This document shows, in pieces, positions 7,201 through 30,800 of a stretch of 64,000 nt of DNA (its first letter is position 1; every line of letters begins with the position of its first letter). The translations under genes and the position numbers were made by a program. The notes beneath the pieces are model-generated. The model ran no database searches and was not told the DNA's origin. It saw nothing but the letters and a program-made list of their open reading frames with translations. The stretch is taken from IMG/VR virus record IMGVR_UViG_3300031576_000001, positions 1 to 64,000 of that record. The stretch is one strand, 5' to 3'.

Positions 7201-8319
7201 ATGACTCTAGCTCCGCTACGTCAAAAGTTTGCTGCGCTCTGCCGTGACCTGTACAGAGCGCGTCCCGTGGTTCAACGGTACGCCTCACTCATGACCCGGC
7301 TAGCGTTCAACACGGACTCTGCGAAGTCCTTGGGTCATGGAGTCTACCGCGTCCTTGTGGACATTGGAATCCAGGGGATGCCCGAGGTCCACGGCAAAGC
7401 CCCGACCCCGAGGCAAGCGTTGCCCTCCTCTTACGGAGCAGACTGGGGGCAGAAGGCGTTTCGCACTGTGCTGAAGTACACACGCAGCGAGGACGCCGCC
7501 GAGAACGTCTGCATGGACTTCTTGGTAGACTTCCTGTCCCATGGCAAGCAAAAGGTGGACCGTGACAAGACCGCTCCCCAGGTTTTGCAATGGGTGATGA
7601 CCTCTTTGGTGAGGGCGGCGATTGACGCTGGGCGTAGGAAGAATCGTGCGCCAGGGGAAGAGTCGATGACGGTGGAGGACGAGGGGGGTGGAGGCTTTAG
7701 TCAACGGGACGTGGTGATGCAGACGGACCTTGAGGGTGTGCTGGGCACGCTAGAGACGTTCAGCGAGGCGTGGCTCAATGCGCTCCTTGAGCGGGAGAAG
7801 CCAGCGCTGGACAAGATTCATCCGGACGCCTACGACTACCTGACCCTTCTCTTGGAGAGTGACATGACGGACCAAGAGATTCTTGGTTTTCGTCAGGGTA
7901 AGCCGGTGGGACCGCCCAAGACCCCGTACCTACGCAAGATATACCCGGGGGGCGCGCTCCCCTCCATGTGGTCCGCCTACAAGAAGAAGATTTTCCAGCA
8001 CTTGAAGAAGGTCATCGAGTCTGGGGCAGTACCCATGGGCGGTATGCTTGGCCTTGGCGCCGTCAACCGCCTCTTTGATCAGTATGAGAAGACCGAGAGG
8101 GAGGGTGGTGACGTGACCTTCCTCTTGGGTCGGCTAGAGAGTCTCTTGTCAGCCTCACCGCAAGCAACGGCGCCCCTGTCCCTGGTAAGGGACGCTCTTG
8201 ACGCAGCGCGTAACGCCCCGTCTGAACCGGACGAGCGTGAGTTTTATATGAGCCAGGCGCGTCAAGAGCTAAGCAAGATGCAAAGAACCTCTCCGTGGTT
8301 AGTGTACCTTCGCACATGA
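7201..8319 (+). CDS. Sigma-factor-like protein (region-2-like segment)
   Basis: AFRTVLKYTRSEDAAENVCMDFL...LQWVMTSLVRAAIDAGRRKNR resembles ECF sigma region 2. Confidence 0.5.
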   Translation: MTLAPLRQKFAALCRDLYRARPVVQRYASLMTRLAFNTDSAKSLGHGVYRVLVDIGIQGMPEVHGKAPTPRQALPSSYGADWGQKAFRTVLKYTRSEDAAENVCMDFLVDFLSHGKQKVDRDKTAPQVLQWVMTSLVRAAIDAGRRKNRAPGEESMTVEDEGGGGFSQRDVVMQTDLEGVLGTLETFSEAWLNALLEREKPALDKIHPDAYDYLTLLLESDMTDQEILGFRQGKPVGPPKTPYLRKIYPGGALPSMWSAYKKKIFQHLKKVIESGAVPMGGMLGLGAVNRLFDQYEKTEREGGDVTFLLGRLESLLSASPQATAPLSLVRDALDAARNAPSEPDEREFYMSQARQELSKMQRTSPWLVYLRT

Positions 8320-17964: not shown

Positions 17965-18387
17965 ATGACCCCCACCGAAGTCAAGCCTGTTAACGTCATC
18001 CACCTCTACAAGGGTACTTACATCGAGTGCTTCCTCGTCCGCGAGGCTTACGCCCGCAGCGGCAACGCTCACAACCCCACCAAGGTTTACAGCTACGCTG
18101 TAAAGGACTGGGAGGGTGGCACGGTGTACATCACCAGCACGTTGCGTGCCGCTAAGGCTTTCATCGACGACGTTGTTTTACACATGACTCGACCTTACGT
18201 TGTCTTCTACGACCTGTTTTTTTCAGGTCCGTACAGCCTGACCGTCGAGGCTGACTCCAAAGAGCACGCCCTAGAGGTAGCCCGCGCTGAGGTAGCTCGG
18301 TCAGGCGTAGGCTACGGCGGGAACCTCAAAGAGGACTCTTTCAGGGTAGGTAAAAAGCTGCCCCCCAGGAAGCTCAAGAAACCATGA
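17965..18387 (+). CDS. Hypothetical protein
   Basis: Start reassigned to the ATG directly after the ECF-type promoter. Confidence 0.65.
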   Translation: MTPTEVKPVNVIHLYKGTYIECFLVREAYARSGNAHNPTKVYSYAVKDWEGGTVYITSTLRAAKAFIDDVVLHMTRPYVVFYDLFFSGPYSLTVEADSKEHALEVARAEVARSGVGYGGNLKEDSFRVGKKLPPRKLKKP

Positions 18388-18992
18388 CGCCCAAGACGAG
18401 AACCCTAGTCAAGCGGGCGCTCATCCGTGACGCCCTTACCCGTGCTCCCCCCGGGGAGCACTTCACCCTAGCCTCTGGGGTACAAACAGACACCTACTGC
18501 GACGTGAAGAAAGCCGCACTTCACAGCGAGACCATGCTGCACCTGGCAGCCCTCCTCGTTAAAGAGTTCCTCCCCGTGGTACCCGACTGTACGGCGCTGG
18601 CGGGCGTATCTCTAGGGGGGTGTCACCTGGCAAGCAGTACGGCAATGTATGCCAAGGTTCACTACGTGGGTGCCTTTGAAGTACTCTACATGCGCAAGGA
18701 AACTAAGGGCTACGGTACCAAGAGCCGGGTCGAGGCGCCGTGCTCCCTTCTTAAAGGAGGGAGGGTGGTTCTCCTAGAGGACGTGGTGACCACGGGGGAC
18801 TCTGTCCTGTCCGCGGCTGACGCCCTTACCCAAGAGGGCTTCAGCGTAAAACTCGTTCTCTCCGTGGTGGACCGGCGCCCCTGGTTTGAGCACTACCTCG
18901 GGGGTGGAAAGTACCCCTACCGGGCTCTTTTCGCGCTGGACGAGCTACTTGCGGACGATTTGTCAGGCAACGCCCCTCAAGAGGGTGTATAG
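18384..18992 (+). CDS. pyrE: Orotate phosphoribosyltransferase
   Basis: FTLASG...YCD, RKETKGYG, PRPP-binding loop VVLLEDVVTTGDS, VVDR. Confidence 0.9.
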   Translation: MTPKTRTLVKRALIRDALTRAPPGEHFTLASGVQTDTYCDVKKAALHSETMLHLAALLVKEFLPVVPDCTALAGVSLGGCHLASSTAMYAKVHYVGAFEVLYMRKETKGYGTKSRVEAPCSLLKGGRVVLLEDVVTTGDSVLSAADALTQEGFSVKLVLSVVDRRPWFEHYLGGGKYPYRALFALDELLADDLSGNAPQEGV

Positions 18993-19037
18993 GTCCGCAG
19001 TCGCCTTGGTGTTGCGGTCAGCGCCAGTGTGACCCAT

Positions 19038-19180
19038 GGGAAGGTAGCTCAGGTCAGAAGAGCACCGGAACGAAAGCACTCTCAAAAAAACATCCTCCCG
19101 GCTCGCGCTGGGACGGTCAAACTGAGGGTTACTTCACCATAAACCGTTGGTCGGTGGTGCAAATCCACCCCTTCCCACCC
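19038..19180 (+). ncRNA. tRNA(CAT)-Y-RNA hybrid 1 (bulged-helix module inserted in the anticodon loop)
   Basis: Acceptor GGGAAGG/CCTTCCC, D arm, T arm GGTGG-TGCAAAT-CCACC; insert CACTCTC..CATCCTCCC-loop-GGGACGGTCA..GAGGGTTACTTC placed before CATAA. Confidence 0.75.
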
Positions 19181-19207
19181 AACTTGACTTTCTCATCAGT
19201 ACACACG

Positions 19208-19285
19208 GGTTCCTTCATCTAAACGGACTAGGAGACCCTTGCTAACGCGAGGAGGATGTACGTTCAAATCGTACAGGAACCACTA
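19208..19285 (+). ncRNA. tRNA-like RNA with an extended anticodon stem closed by a TAAC tetraloop
   Basis: Acceptor GGTTCCT/AGGAACC, T arm GTACG-TTCAAAT-CGTAC; CTTGC-TAAC-GCGAG replaces the 7-nt loop. Confidence 0.65.
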
Positions 19286-19286
19286 A

Positions 19287-19356
19287 GGCGGGCAGTCAAC
19301 CGGCAAGGGTTACTTCACCACTAACGAAAAACACCTTTGCCACCACACCTCCCGCC
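19287..19356 (+). ncRNA. Minimal Y-RNA-like RNA
   Basis: GGCGGG-C-AG-TCA..GGCAAGGGTTACTTC..GAA..CCTTTGCC..CT-CCCGCC. Confidence 0.75.
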
Positions 19357-19363
19357 TACTTAT

Positions 19364-19494
19364 TGCAGTGTAGCTCGACGGTAGAGCACGCATGACGCCC
19401 TGAGCGTCAACCTCCCCAGCTAACGCCGGGGCAGTCATTGCATAGGGTTACTCCCATAAGCAGGACGAGGCGGGGCGTAGTCCCTCCACTGCAA
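19364..19494 (+). ncRNA. tRNA(CAT)-Y-RNA hybrid 2
   Basis: Acceptor TGCAGTG/CACTGCA, D arm TAGCTCGACGGTAGAGC; insert AACCTCCCC-loop-GGGGCAGTCA..TAGGGTTACTCC placed before CATAA; degenerate T loop. Confidence 0.7.
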
Positions 19495-19515
19495 CTTCTA
19501 CGACTTTCAGCCGCG

Positions 19516-19541
19516 AACCTCTCTCAACCAGGAGCAGTCAC
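19516..19541 (+). promoter_or_regulatory. Y-motif-like bulged hairpin covering the Shine-Dalgarno of the Ro60 gene
   Basis: AAC-CT-CTCT-caacca-GGAG-C-AG-TCA-C-ATG has the same geometry as the ncRNA motif. Confidence 0.5.
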
Positions 19542-21101
19542 ATGGGCCAATCCAAGTCGCACAAGAACTTCATGGCGGGCACGAGCTACACAGTCTCGCC
19601 CCTACTCACCCTTCGTATCGCAGCGGCGTCGTGCTTCTTCGGGGAGCCCACGTTCTACGGAGCCAAGGACAGCAAGCCGGTCGCGCCCTCCCAGCAACCC
19701 CAAGCGGTACAGAAGCACCTGAGTGTAACCCTCGGGGGTCTGGGGCAACCTGACTTCTCGGGGCTCACGCCCTCTCAGCGCATGGAGAAGGTCATTGACA
19801 ACGCGCTCGACGCGGACCCCGAGGCTACCCTCCAAGAGGCGGTTCTGCTCCGTAAGCAGGGTCACATTCGTACCACGCCCCAGGTCATCATGGTCCGGGC
19901 GGCGCGTCACCCCAAGGTGAGGGGCACGGGGCTCATCCGGCAGTACGCACCCAACATCCTGTCCAGGGGGGATGAGTCAGCGGTACAACTCAAGTACCTC
20001 AGCAACCTAACGGGCAAGGGGCCCATCCCCAACGCCCTCAAGAAGGCGTGGGCTGCTCACCTCTCGGGCATGAATGAGTACACGCTGGCCAAATACGCCA
20101 AGGACGGGCTGACCGACGTGGCGAACGTGTGTCACCCCGCAGGCAACCCTCTCTTGGAGAAGCTGGTCAAGGGCAAGCTCTCTCAGGGGGGCTCGACTTG
20201 GGAAGCCATCGTGAGCAAGGATGGCTCGACCAAGGAGGCATGGTCCAAGGCGGTCTCCGTCATGGGGCACATGGCGCTCCTACGCAACCTGCGCAACTTC
20301 CACGAGAAGGGCGTAGACCCCGCCGTCTACCTGGACAAGCTGGTGAACACCGCCAAGGACGGCAAGCAATTGCCGTTCCGCTACTGGTCCGCTTACAACG
20401 CCCTATCCGAGGGGAGCGCTACCACGCGGCAAGCCATCGAGGAGTGCTTGAAGAACTCGCTGGGTTTCCTGCCCTTCTTCAAGGGTAAGGTCGCGTCCCT
20501 CTGCGACAACTCAGGTTCCGCGGTGTCTGCCCGGGTGTCGTGCATGAGCGACGTGAACGTGGCGACCATTGCCAACCTCTCGGCGCTTCTCACGGGCTAC
20601 CAGTCGGACGAGGGCTGGGTCGGGCTCTTTGGGGACCGGCTTACGATGCGCCAGGTGGACCGCAGCAAGGCGCCCCTGGCTCAGCTTGCCGCTCTGAACG
20701 TGCTGGGTAAGCAGGTAGGCGGCTACACGGAGAACGGGATTTGGCTCTTCTGGGACGAGGCGATCCGCACCAAGAAGCACTGGGATCACGTTTTTGTCTA
20801 CAGCGACATGCAAGCCGGTCACGGTGACTTGTACGGCTCAGACCCGAGCCAATACAAGGCTTTCCAGTGGGTTCAGAACCCCAGCCACATTGACGTGGCT
20901 CGTCTCATCGGAGCCTACCGCGCCAGCGTGAACCCGAAGGTCAACGTGTTCCTGGTTCAGTGCGCGGGCTACGCAGACGCGATCCTGCCCGAGGAGTACT
21001 ACCGCACCAGCATCCTCGGCGGCTGGGGTGACGGTATCTTCCACTACGCGGACCAGATGACCCGTCTCTTTGACGGTCTGGACGCTTCGCAAGCAACTTG
21101 A
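19542..21101 (+). CDS. Ro60/Rsr-like TROVE-domain RNA-binding protein with a C-terminal vWA domain
   Basis: FFGEPTFY, YTLAKY, TWEAIVS, MGHMALLRNLRN, KQLPFRYWSAY, MIDAS-like DNSGS, VYSDMQ. Confidence 0.93.
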   Translation: MGQSKSHKNFMAGTSYTVSPLLTLRIAAASCFFGEPTFYGAKDSKPVAPSQQPQAVQKHLSVTLGGLGQPDFSGLTPSQRMEKVIDNALDADPEATLQEAVLLRKQGHIRTTPQVIMVRAARHPKVRGTGLIRQYAPNILSRGDESAVQLKYLSNLTGKGPIPNALKKAWAAHLSGMNEYTLAKYAKDGLTDVANVCHPAGNPLLEKLVKGKLSQGGSTWEAIVSKDGSTKEAWSKAVSVMGHMALLRNLRNFHEKGVDPAVYLDKLVNTAKDGKQLPFRYWSAYNALSEGSATTRQAIEECLKNSLGFLPFFKGKVASLCDNSGSAVSARVSCMSDVNVATIANLSALLTGYQSDEGWVGLFGDRLTMRQVDRSKAPLAQLAALNVLGKQVGGYTENGIWLFWDEAIRTKKHWDHVFVYSDMQAGHGDLYGSDPSQYKAFQWVQNPSHIDVARLIGAYRASVNPKVNVFLVQCAGYADAILPEEYYRTSILGGWGDGIFHYADQMTRLFDGLDASQAT

Positions 21102-23685: not shown

Positions 23686-23790
23686 AGAGTGTAGTCAAAG
23701 AAGAGGGTTACTTCCTCTAGTAAGAGAAACCTGACGGTTCGATTCCGTCCCGGCGTGGTCGCCATACACTCTCTTCGTTCATCTCACTCT
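23686..23790 (+). ncRNA. YrlA-like Y RNA with an internal T arm
   Basis: AGAGTG-T-AG-TCA..GAAGAGGGTTACTTC..GACGG-TTCGATT-CCGTC..CTCTCTTC..CT-CACTCT. Confidence 0.8.
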
Positions 23791-23793
23791 CTA

Positions 23794-23867
23794 TCCTCGG
23801 TAGCTCAAGTGAAGAGCACCTCCTGTTTACAGGGGTTGATGCTAGGTTCGATGCCTAGCCCTTGGGC
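23794..23867 (+). ncRNA. tRNA-like RNA with an expanded anticodon arm (CTG-TTTA-CAG)
   Basis: Canonical D and T arms; imperfect acceptor stem. Confidence 0.55.
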
Positions 23868-25063: not shown

Positions 25064-25153
25064 GCCCTGGTAGCTCAACTACGAGAGCGCCCCTGTAGTG
25101 TCCCCAGGGACCAACAGGGGAGGTTGGAGGTGCAAATCCTTCCCCGGGCCCCA
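25064..25153 (+). ncRNA. tRNA-like RNA whose anticodon arm is replaced by a long hairpin; CCA end
   Basis: CCCCTGT..GTCCC-CA-GGGAC..ACAGGGG lies between normal D and T arms. Confidence 0.65.
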
Positions 25154-25389: not shown

Positions 25390-25452
25390 AGGTGTAGTCA
25401 CTCAGAGGGTTACTTCGGCAAGAACAGGCACCCTCTAAACTCTATCTCACCT
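25390..25452 (+). ncRNA. Minimal Y-RNA-like RNA
   Basis: AGGTG-T-AG-TCA..AGAGGGTTACTTC-GGCAA-GAA..ACCCTCT..CT-CACCT. Confidence 0.75.
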
Positions 25453-27773: not shown

Positions 27774-27857
27774 GTGCGTAGTCACGAGAGACGGTTACTT
27801 CAACAAAACTGGTGAAATTACCCCCGCAAGGGGGACCGTAGCTCAACAATCTCGCAT
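27774..27857 (+). ncRNA. Y-RNA-like RNA
   Basis: GTGCG-T-AG-TCA..GACGGTTACTTC..GAA..CCCC-GCAA-GGGG..ACCGT..CT-CGCAT. Confidence 0.75.
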
Positions 27858-30255: not shown

Positions 30256-30633
30256 GGGGATGAATTGGCTTCGATCAGGGCTAAGCATTCTCACTCGCAG
30301 GCGCGCTTTTCCTGGCCGTAGCGCTAAAAGAAGCTGGGGACCGACAACTGCCAACGACAACGTTGAAGCTGCTCCTCTCGCCCTCGCGGCGTTAGGTGGT
30401 TGGGGTGGGCTAGATACCCTTAGTAACCCCCTCGACTCAAAAGTGACCAAGGGTGCGCTGCCCGACGACGCGCTGTAAGAGTAGGGTGGCTAAGAGCGAG
30501 TTTACAGACATGGCCAGGCGTGACCTTGGAAACCCACCTCTCAGGGGAGACTGTAGAGAGGAAAGCCTGTAAACATAGAGAGTGGGCGATCTTTACTCTG
30601 AGACCGCGGGATCGAACCCGCGCATCTCCACCA
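30256..30633 (+). ncRNA. ssrA: tmRNA
   Basis: GGGGATG..GGCTTCGA 5' end, CATCTCC-ACCA 3' end with G3-U70, T arm, and tag frame ANDNVEAAPLALAA from 30350. Confidence 0.95.
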
Positions 30634-30729: not shown

Positions 30730-30800
30730 GCCCCTGTAGCTCAATAGAAGAGCAGTAGCCTTGTAACCTACCGACGACGGTGCAATCCCGTCCTGGGGCT
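30730..30800 (+). tRNA. tRNA-Thr(TGT)
   Basis: GTAG(C)-CTTGTAA-(C)CTAC. Confidence 0.8.

Follow-up and report, generated by a model that had tools for sequence, protein, structure and literature searches.

The analysed stretch of DNA (the window) comprises 64,000 nucleotides and is part of IMGVR_UViG_3300031576_000001, a 322-kb uncultivated phage contig. It carries 38 tRNA genes and a tmRNA, all on the + strand. The ORF 19542-21101 encodes a Ro60 homologue of 519 aa, as indicated by a Pfam TROVE match (E 2e-10), a match to the Ro60 structures 9KOP/9L5Y of Thermus phage phiLo (E 1e-10), and 41.5% identity to the TROVE protein of Bacillus phage G. A Pfam search of nine neighbouring ORFs identified a methylase, ClpP, a phosphoesterase and a chaperonin, none of which bears on RNA function. 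The roughly 500 bases directly upstream of the Ro60 gene contain two elements, named E1 and E3, and an intervening unit (E2a, E2b). Y RNAs are the RNA partners of Ro60. The relevant features are as follows.

19038-19177, + strand: E1, Y RNA in tRNA order. Acceptor GGGAAGG 19038-19044 pairs with CCTTCCC 19170-19176 (7/7), followed by A 19177; U8 A9; D arm GCTC/GAGC 19047-19063; weak anticodon-stem remnant 19064-19068 / 19143-19147; CGAAAG 19071-19076; outer Y helix ACTCTCA 19078-19084 / TGAGGGT 19123-19129; hairpin CCTCCCGGC-TCGC-GCTGGGA(C)GG 19094-19116 with a bulged C at 19114, then TCA; GGGTTACTTC 19126-19135; CATAA 19138-19142; variable loop TGGTC 19148-19152; T arm GGTGG-TGCAAAT-CCACC 19153-19169.
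19208-19282, + strand: E2a, tRNA-like element with a 7-bp acceptor GGTTCCT/AGGAACC, a T arm GTACG-TTCAAAT-CGTAC 19258-19274 and a tetraloop-capped "anticodon" arm (fold z = -2.5); called neither by ARAGORN nor by the Rfam tRNA model; probably a processing handle for the Y RNA that follows 4 nt later.
19287-19356, + strand: E2b, small Y RNA in the usual order, with end stem GGCGGG(C)AG / CTCCCGCC, helix GGCAAGGGT / ACCTTTGCC and apical loop TACTTCACCACTAACGAAAAAC; the 3' strand lies 55 nt downstream of the 5' strand.
19364-19494, + strand: E3, second and more diverged Y RNA in tRNA order. Acceptor TGCAGTG 19364-19370 pairs with CACTGCA 19487-19493 (7/7); D arm 19373-19387; possible outer Y helix GCCCTG 19397-19402 / TAGGGT 19443-19448; hairpin CTCCCCAGC-TAAC-GCCGGGG(C)AG 19412-19434; GGGTTACTCC 19445-19454; CATAA 19455-19459; degenerate T arm 19470-19486 with one C-U mismatch and a non-canonical loop GCGTAGT.
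19542-21101, + strand: Ro60 (TROVE) gene, beginning 48 nt after E3 and 365 nt after E1.
23687-23789, + strand: usual-order Y RNA with a T arm, inside the tRNA array.
25390-25452, + strand: small usual-order Y RNA that starts the base after tRNA-Gln and ends 6 nt before tRNA-Lys.
27774-27857, + strand: usual-order Y RNA between tRNA-Ser and tRNA-Leu.

In the original prediction, E1 and E3 were described as tRNA-Y RNA hybrids with an open acceptor stem, a D arm and a T arm, which carry an insert of about 60-70 nt with the strands of a Y-like motif in permuted order, just 5' of a retained CATAA. This description is confirmed. Whether the insert folds into a bulged helix had been set as a test beforehand. 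The unconstrained minimum-energy fold of E1 consists of exactly the acceptor, the D arm, the bulged hairpin inside the 7-bp outer helix, and the T arm (-51 kcal/mol, z = -3.2). For E3, the fold of the model (-35.6 kcal/mol) is 18 kcal/mol weaker than the minimum-energy fold (-53.3 kcal/mol), which keeps the acceptor, D arm and hairpin but not the outer Y helix. Compared to E1, the bulged helix of E3 shows two pairs changed on both sides (G-C to A-U and A-U to G-C). ARAGORN in intron mode calls E1 a tRNA with a 68-nt insert at position 32/33, whereas default ARAGORN and Rfam scans at gathering and E-value thresholds call nothing at either element. The only trace is a partial 17-bit match of the Rfam tRNA model in E1 (19110-19177); there is none in E3, and E3 is never called by ARAGORN. 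A promoter and terminator scan found no consensus.

In order to characterize the Y motif, Ro60 loci were retrieved with the Ro60 protein. The module occurs six times in the window around the Ro60 gene, namely in E1, E3 and the four usual-order Y RNAs, and it is shared with Y RNAs in about 50 Ro60 loci, where it lies on the strand of the gene and usually upstream. In every such locus except the window, the strand pairing with the 5' stem lies downstream, at a distance of 50-70 nt in small Y RNAs and of 85-135 nt in those that enclose a T arm, a closed acceptor-like stem-loop and a D arm. The latter kind is YrlA (Rfam RF02553). In Zavarzinella formosa, the Rfam YrlA model matches such copies with 38.8 and 31.1 bits and aligns GGGTTACTT to its 5' Ro-side motif region. 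In contrast, no YrlA hit was obtained at E <= 10 in 18900-19650. At the aligned model positions, this clade contains GGGTTACTT rather than the YrlA motif GNCGAAN0-1G; E1 lacks the exact motif but carries a CGAAAG stretch that can be paired by hand with the ACTTC part of GGGTTACTT.

YrlA is described as a tRNA circularly permuted at the anticodon, with the RNA ends in the Ro-side stem and a closed acceptor-type stem (Chen et al. 2014, PMC4201824; Wang et al. 2018). In E1 and E3, the pairing strand lies about 20 nt upstream of the 5' strand across a tetraloop (TCGC or TAAC), and the acceptor strands are 132 and 123 nt apart without any closing loop, which is the opposite topology. To test the permutation directly, E1 and E3 were cut in the tetraloop, rejoined at the acceptor, and aligned globally to three usual-order YrlAs from a related phage, Zavarzinella and Bacillus phage G. 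The permuted E1 scores 29 / 16.5 / 14 and the permuted E3 scores 12 / 10.5 / 0.5, which is 3.4-7.2 standard deviations above shuffles. In native order, E1 scores -2 / -3 / -15.5, and both elements score no better than shuffles.

The search for the permuted topology in other phages was successful. A pattern requiring a D arm, 45-75 nt and GGTTACT was applied to IMG/VR, followed by stricter patterns in IMG/VR, GTDB genomes and JGI metagenomes. An initial hairpin filter was too permissive and was replaced by acceptor pairing plus inspection. Clear members, given here by the numbers of the retrieved contigs, are in at least 12 other viral contigs (L066, L073 with four copies, L079, L082, L087, L127, L175, L180, L183, L184, L185 and L058) and in L177, a Nannocystaceae MAG contig. 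About 15 further distinct metagenome sequences each have 7/7 acceptor pairing. Many members sit inside tRNA arrays. A TROVE gene lies within the fetched DNA of L073, L175, L177, L180, L186 and L058; no Ro60 gene lay within the fetched pieces of L066, L079 and L127. In L177 and L180 the element is located directly upstream, as it is here, and the Ro60 fragment of L177 is 49% identical to that of the window.

Pair counts were determined for 19 members, all from outside the window. Of the cells, 86% are paired, compared to 36-48% when the partners are slid, and 25 of 33 pairs have changes on both sides; another count gave similar values. The acceptor is 97% paired with all seven pairs covarying, the T arm is 100% paired, the outer Y helix 80% and the bulged helix 78%; the acceptor, the T arm and both Y-arm helices show compensatory changes. 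Folded alone, the Y arms give the same outer helix plus capped bulged hairpin in nearly all members. A covariance model (R2) was built from these 19 sequences only. It finds E1 (51.9 bits, E 4e-12) and E3 (40.4 bits, E 5e-9) as the two best hits of the 64-kb window, at full length and with the Y arm aligned; all 38 tRNAs score 31 bits or less. E1 and E3 therefore belong to this class, which we define by an open 7-bp acceptor, a D arm, a capped Y arm with GGGTTAC and a T arm, in that order. As the hits of R2 and of another model, R1, included ordinary tRNAs and usual-order tandems (L041, L133/L176), they were checked one by one.

Two subtypes can be distinguished. In E1, L184 and L073 7954-8087, an anticodon-type stem made by the flanks closes a loop that holds the Y arm. 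In L073 10379-10507, L180, L175, L079 and others, the Y arm emerges right after the D arm and is followed by a separate 5-bp hairpin with a 7-nt loop of anticodon form (CTGTTAA, CTGCTAA, TTTGTAA and so on) and a standard 5-nt variable loop. A reading of this hairpin as a variable arm was rejected, because it is 17 nt long and followed by a standard 5-nt NGGTC loop.

The interpretation offered in the original prediction is only partly supported. The circular permutation of the YrlA layout is confirmed, whereas the identity as tRNA(CAT) is not established. ARAGORN reads the loop of E1 differently (ATA), and trial excisions of the insert give Trp, Met and Tyr calls in turn; E3 gives none. The anticodon stem is weak in either register, with four pairs plus a mismatch as drawn by ARAGORN or three of five pairs in our hand pairing. 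In alignments, CATAA of E1 and E3 falls on the 3' part of the anticodon-like loops of relatives, and the tRNA-less Y RNA E2 contains CACTAA at the same place. CATAA is therefore best read as a remnant. Furthermore, in many relatives the Y arm is not inside the anticodon loop at all. Among the proposed roles, an evolutionary intermediate between tRNA and YrlA is compatible with the data, a chargeable Ro-tethered decoy remains a conjecture, and an intron-like segment is the weakest idea.

We consider it likely that E1 and E3 are phage Y RNAs of the tRNA-mimicking (YrlA) kind, encoded in the order of a real tRNA, in which a Y arm replaces the anticodon loop and is followed by a remnant of that loop. 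The Y arm consists of an outer helix, the conserved GGGTTACTT/CGAAAG internal loop, and a short bulged helix capped by a tetraloop. What the sequences themselves demonstrate is the anatomy, the permutation relative to usual-order YrlA, the membership of a recurrent class with covarying helices, and the position next to Ro60 and beside a tRNA array. Transcription, processing, Ro60 binding, the effector role and any charging are inferred from uncultivated sequence alone. In this view, the locus would be transcribed with the tRNA array and the Ro60 gene. The usual-order Y RNAs of this phage are wedged between tRNAs, and their ends are thus presumably made by processing of the neighbouring tRNAs. 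E1 and E3, however, carry signals of their own, namely a 7-bp acceptor with T and D arms, which is the RNase P determinant. RNase P would cut at the first base of the acceptor, and 3' trimming plus the CCA-adding enzyme would finish the other end; few, if any, of the phage's tRNA genes encode CCA, so that it would be added after transcription. The RNAs would thereby receive defined, protected ends from the host's tRNA machinery rather than from a promoter and terminator of their own. This is in line with the finding that the one YrlA with a 7-bp acceptor, that of M. smegmatis, is cut by RNase P and receives CCA in vivo (PMC4201824). Mature RNAs of about 140 and 131 nt plus CCA are expected, which would bind the phage Ro60 through the Y arm, although the capped bulged helix is only 5-9 bp long and closed at that end. 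By analogy with complexes from Deinococcus, Salmonella and phage phiLo (PMC12135203), the tRNA-shaped half would act as the effector module and tether Ro60 to a partner such as PNPase or another tRNA-recognising or RNA-degrading protein.

Alternative explanations appear unlikely, but differ in their merits. E1 and E3 might be decoding tRNAs from which the Y arm is cut out, with ligation of the halves giving a normal tRNA plus a free Y RNA. The ARAGORN call of E1 is in agreement with this idea, the Rfam tRNA model passes its gathering score on L073 7954-8087 and 7647-7785 with the arm treated as an insert, and after trial excision many relatives give clean calls (Asn GTT, Cys GCA, Thr TGT/GGT, Ser GCT, Gly TCC). 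Several relatives keep a 5-bp / 7-nt anticodon-like hairpin followed by a 5-nt variable loop. However, E1 gives no stable anticodon call, the anticodon-like loops of relatives are often 5, 6 or 8 nt long, the insertion point differs between members, and the phages already carry ordinary tRNAs with the same anticodons. No splicing endonuclease for such short inserts is known in bacteria or their phages, whose tRNA introns are group I, and the inserted arm is the same conserved module as in free-standing Y RNAs rather than a generic intron. This reading is therefore weak for E1 and E3 and remains open only for relatives with intact anticodon-like arms.

It is even less likely that the layout results from misparsing a tandem array of usual-order YrlAs, each starting at the Y 5' strand of one unit and ending at the Y 3' strand of the next, such that GGGACGG of E1 would pair with CCTCCCG of E2 at 19348. 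Unit borders in tandem arrays are inherently ambiguous, the E1 5' strand could also pair with sites 56 and 233 nt downstream, and the first search pattern also picked up usual-order tandems (L133/L176, L041 and Zavarzinella). On the other hand, no closed acceptor-like stem-loop exists: CCTTCCC has its only partner upstream at 19038, and nothing upstream of 19038 supplies a T arm. The two Y strands of E1 and E3 are separated by just 4 nt and differ between the elements by compensatory changes, the flanking acceptor covaries across the class, and E3 has no downstream partner for its 5' strand. A third possibility is that the elements are decaying relics of tRNA or Y RNA genes, scrambled by recombination among the repeated modules of this locus. 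E1 has non-standard loops, as its D loop lacks the usual GG and its T loop has G at position 55, and E3 has a degenerate T loop, a poor anticodon-stem remnant and an ambiguous fold. Yet the layout is conserved with covariation in many divergent contigs, and the acceptor stems of E1 and E3 are perfect although their sequences differ. Moreover, the D/T loop pair of E1 (no GG; TGCAAAT) recurs in other tRNA-like genes of the phage at 25064-25150 and 30730-30800, which suggests a maintained variant. Decay is doubtful for the pair but remains plausible for E3 alone.

No description of a Y RNA with this topology was found in Chen et al. 2014, Wang et al. 2018, the 2025 phiLo paper, full-text searches or Rfam 15, although this survey did not extend to three reviews on Ro60 and Y RNAs. 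Chen et al. removed candidates overlapping annotated tRNAs and used a model with the permuted order, so these RNAs would have been missed. A blastn search of the locus against GenBank phages gave no match, and searches with two relatives gave only tRNA-like fragments, so no cultured phage with this layout was found. YrlA resembles E1 and E3 in being encoded next to Ro60 on the same strand, in its tRNA-like D arm, T arm and acceptor-type stem, and in a Ro-side module that joins the tRNA-like part where the anticodon stem would be. A processed Y RNA reported in 2014 ends up with an opened 7-bp acceptor and a CCA end, but there the opening is made by processing and gives a nicked, two-piece RNA with the Ro-side ends still free, whereas here a one-piece RNA with that end state is written in the gene order itself. 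The phage-encoded Yrl1/Yrl2 of phiLo and the Y RNAs of mycobacteriophages and Bacillus phage G likewise lie upstream of a phage Ro60, and the phiLo RNAs bind the phage Ro60 and host PNPase (PMC12135203). All of these have a 5'-3' end stem; phage G, whose Ro60 is the closest from a cultured phage, carries five small Y RNAs and one YrlA in the usual order. Intron-containing tRNA genes also have a long insert in or next to the anticodon arm, but here the insert is a conserved Ro-associated module, its position varies and the anticodon arm is often defective. The circularly permuted tRNA genes of red algae and an archaeon (Soma 2007 and others, as cited in Wang et al. 2018) show the same kind of relation between two gene orders of one tRNA fold. 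Those are precursors processed back into ordinary decoding tRNAs through a circular intermediate, whereas here the tRNA order is the unusual one for the family and no decoding role is evident.

The finding bears on two open questions, namely what the tRNA-like half of bacterial and phage Y RNAs does and how the permuted YrlA layout arose. It provides a natural, one-piece molecule on which RNase P cleavage, CCA addition, charging and Ro60 binding can all be tested. It further shows that homology searches built on the YrlA order and standard tRNA finders both miss, or mislabel as intron-containing tRNAs, a whole set of Ro-associated RNAs in large phages. A more speculative and rather unlikely possibility, which would be of considerable interest, is that the tRNA-order form works as a tRNA with a Ro handle, whose free CCA end can be charged or bound by tRNA-handling proteins while it carries Ro60. 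In relatives with intact anticodon-like loops, it could serve as a Ro-tethered bait for tRNA-targeting enzymes. Equally tentatively, it could be the missing partner form that explains how YrlA arose. Tandem duplication of a unit in either order contains the other order in its middle, which fits the dimeric-tRNA origin proposed by Wang et al. 2018 without indicating a direction. The two layouts coexist in single phage genomes, as expected if they interconvert by tandem duplication, and tandem pairs of both kinds exist, in tRNA order in L073 and L087 and in the usual order in the retrieved contig L003 and in Zavarzinella.

Besides the elements directly upstream of the Ro60 gene, three further Y RNAs in the usual order were found inside the tRNA array of the window, each of them flanked within a few bases by tRNA genes. 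The phage therefore encodes at least six Y modules. The array also contains a phage-encoded tmRNA, which was detected by Rfam with 52.8 bits, and the window has three tRNA-like genes that are not called by ARAGORN. The corresponding features of the window are:

23687-23789, usual-order Y RNA that also carries a T arm
25390-25452, usual-order Y RNA
27774-27857, usual-order Y RNA
23794-23867, tRNA-like gene not called by ARAGORN
25064-25150, tRNA-like gene not called by ARAGORN, with a long hairpin instead of an anticodon arm
30730-30800, tRNA-like gene not called by ARAGORN, but found by the Rfam tRNA model (54 bits)
30256-30633, tmRNA
19208-19282, tRNA-like element preceding a small Y RNA
18384-18992, ORF just upstream of E1

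The gene at 25064-25150 resembles E1, the first of the Y RNAs in tRNA order, in that it has the T loop TGCAAAT and a D loop without GG. The gene at 30730-30800 has the T loop TGCAATC and also lacks GG. This looks like a phage-specific, co-varying pair of D and T loops. The element at 19208-19282 has a perfect acceptor and a canonical T arm; however, its "anticodon" stem comprises 6 bp and is capped by a tetraloop. It is placed 4 nt before a small Y RNA and looks like a processing handle. The ORF at 18384-18992 has a phosphoribosyltransferase domain (Pfam E 8e-7).

Related RNAs were also observed outside the window. In the viral contig L073, two Y RNAs in tRNA order (7647-7785 and 7954-8087, both on the minus strand) are scored by the Rfam tRNA model above its gathering threshold, with 43.5 and 48 bits, respectively, because the Y arm is treated as an insert. 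Such elements may be annotated as intron-containing tRNAs in public records. In Bacillus phage G (NC_023719; 1690-1870 and 3190-3860), there is one usual-order YrlA, whose 7-bp acceptor-like stem is followed by ACCA at the start of a 25-nt loop. This arrangement hints at an opening by RNase P as in M. smegmatis. In addition, five small Y RNAs lie upstream of the TROVE gene of phage G; none of these RNAs is annotated in the record. In Zavarzinella formosa DSM 19928 (NZ_JH636454; 3070-3500, minus strand), four usual-order Y RNAs lie upstream of rsr. One of them holds an anticodon-like hairpin with a 5-bp stem and a 7-nt loop (CTGTTAA), and ARAGORN calls a tRNA-Asn inside this Y RNA, which is probably a false tRNA annotation.
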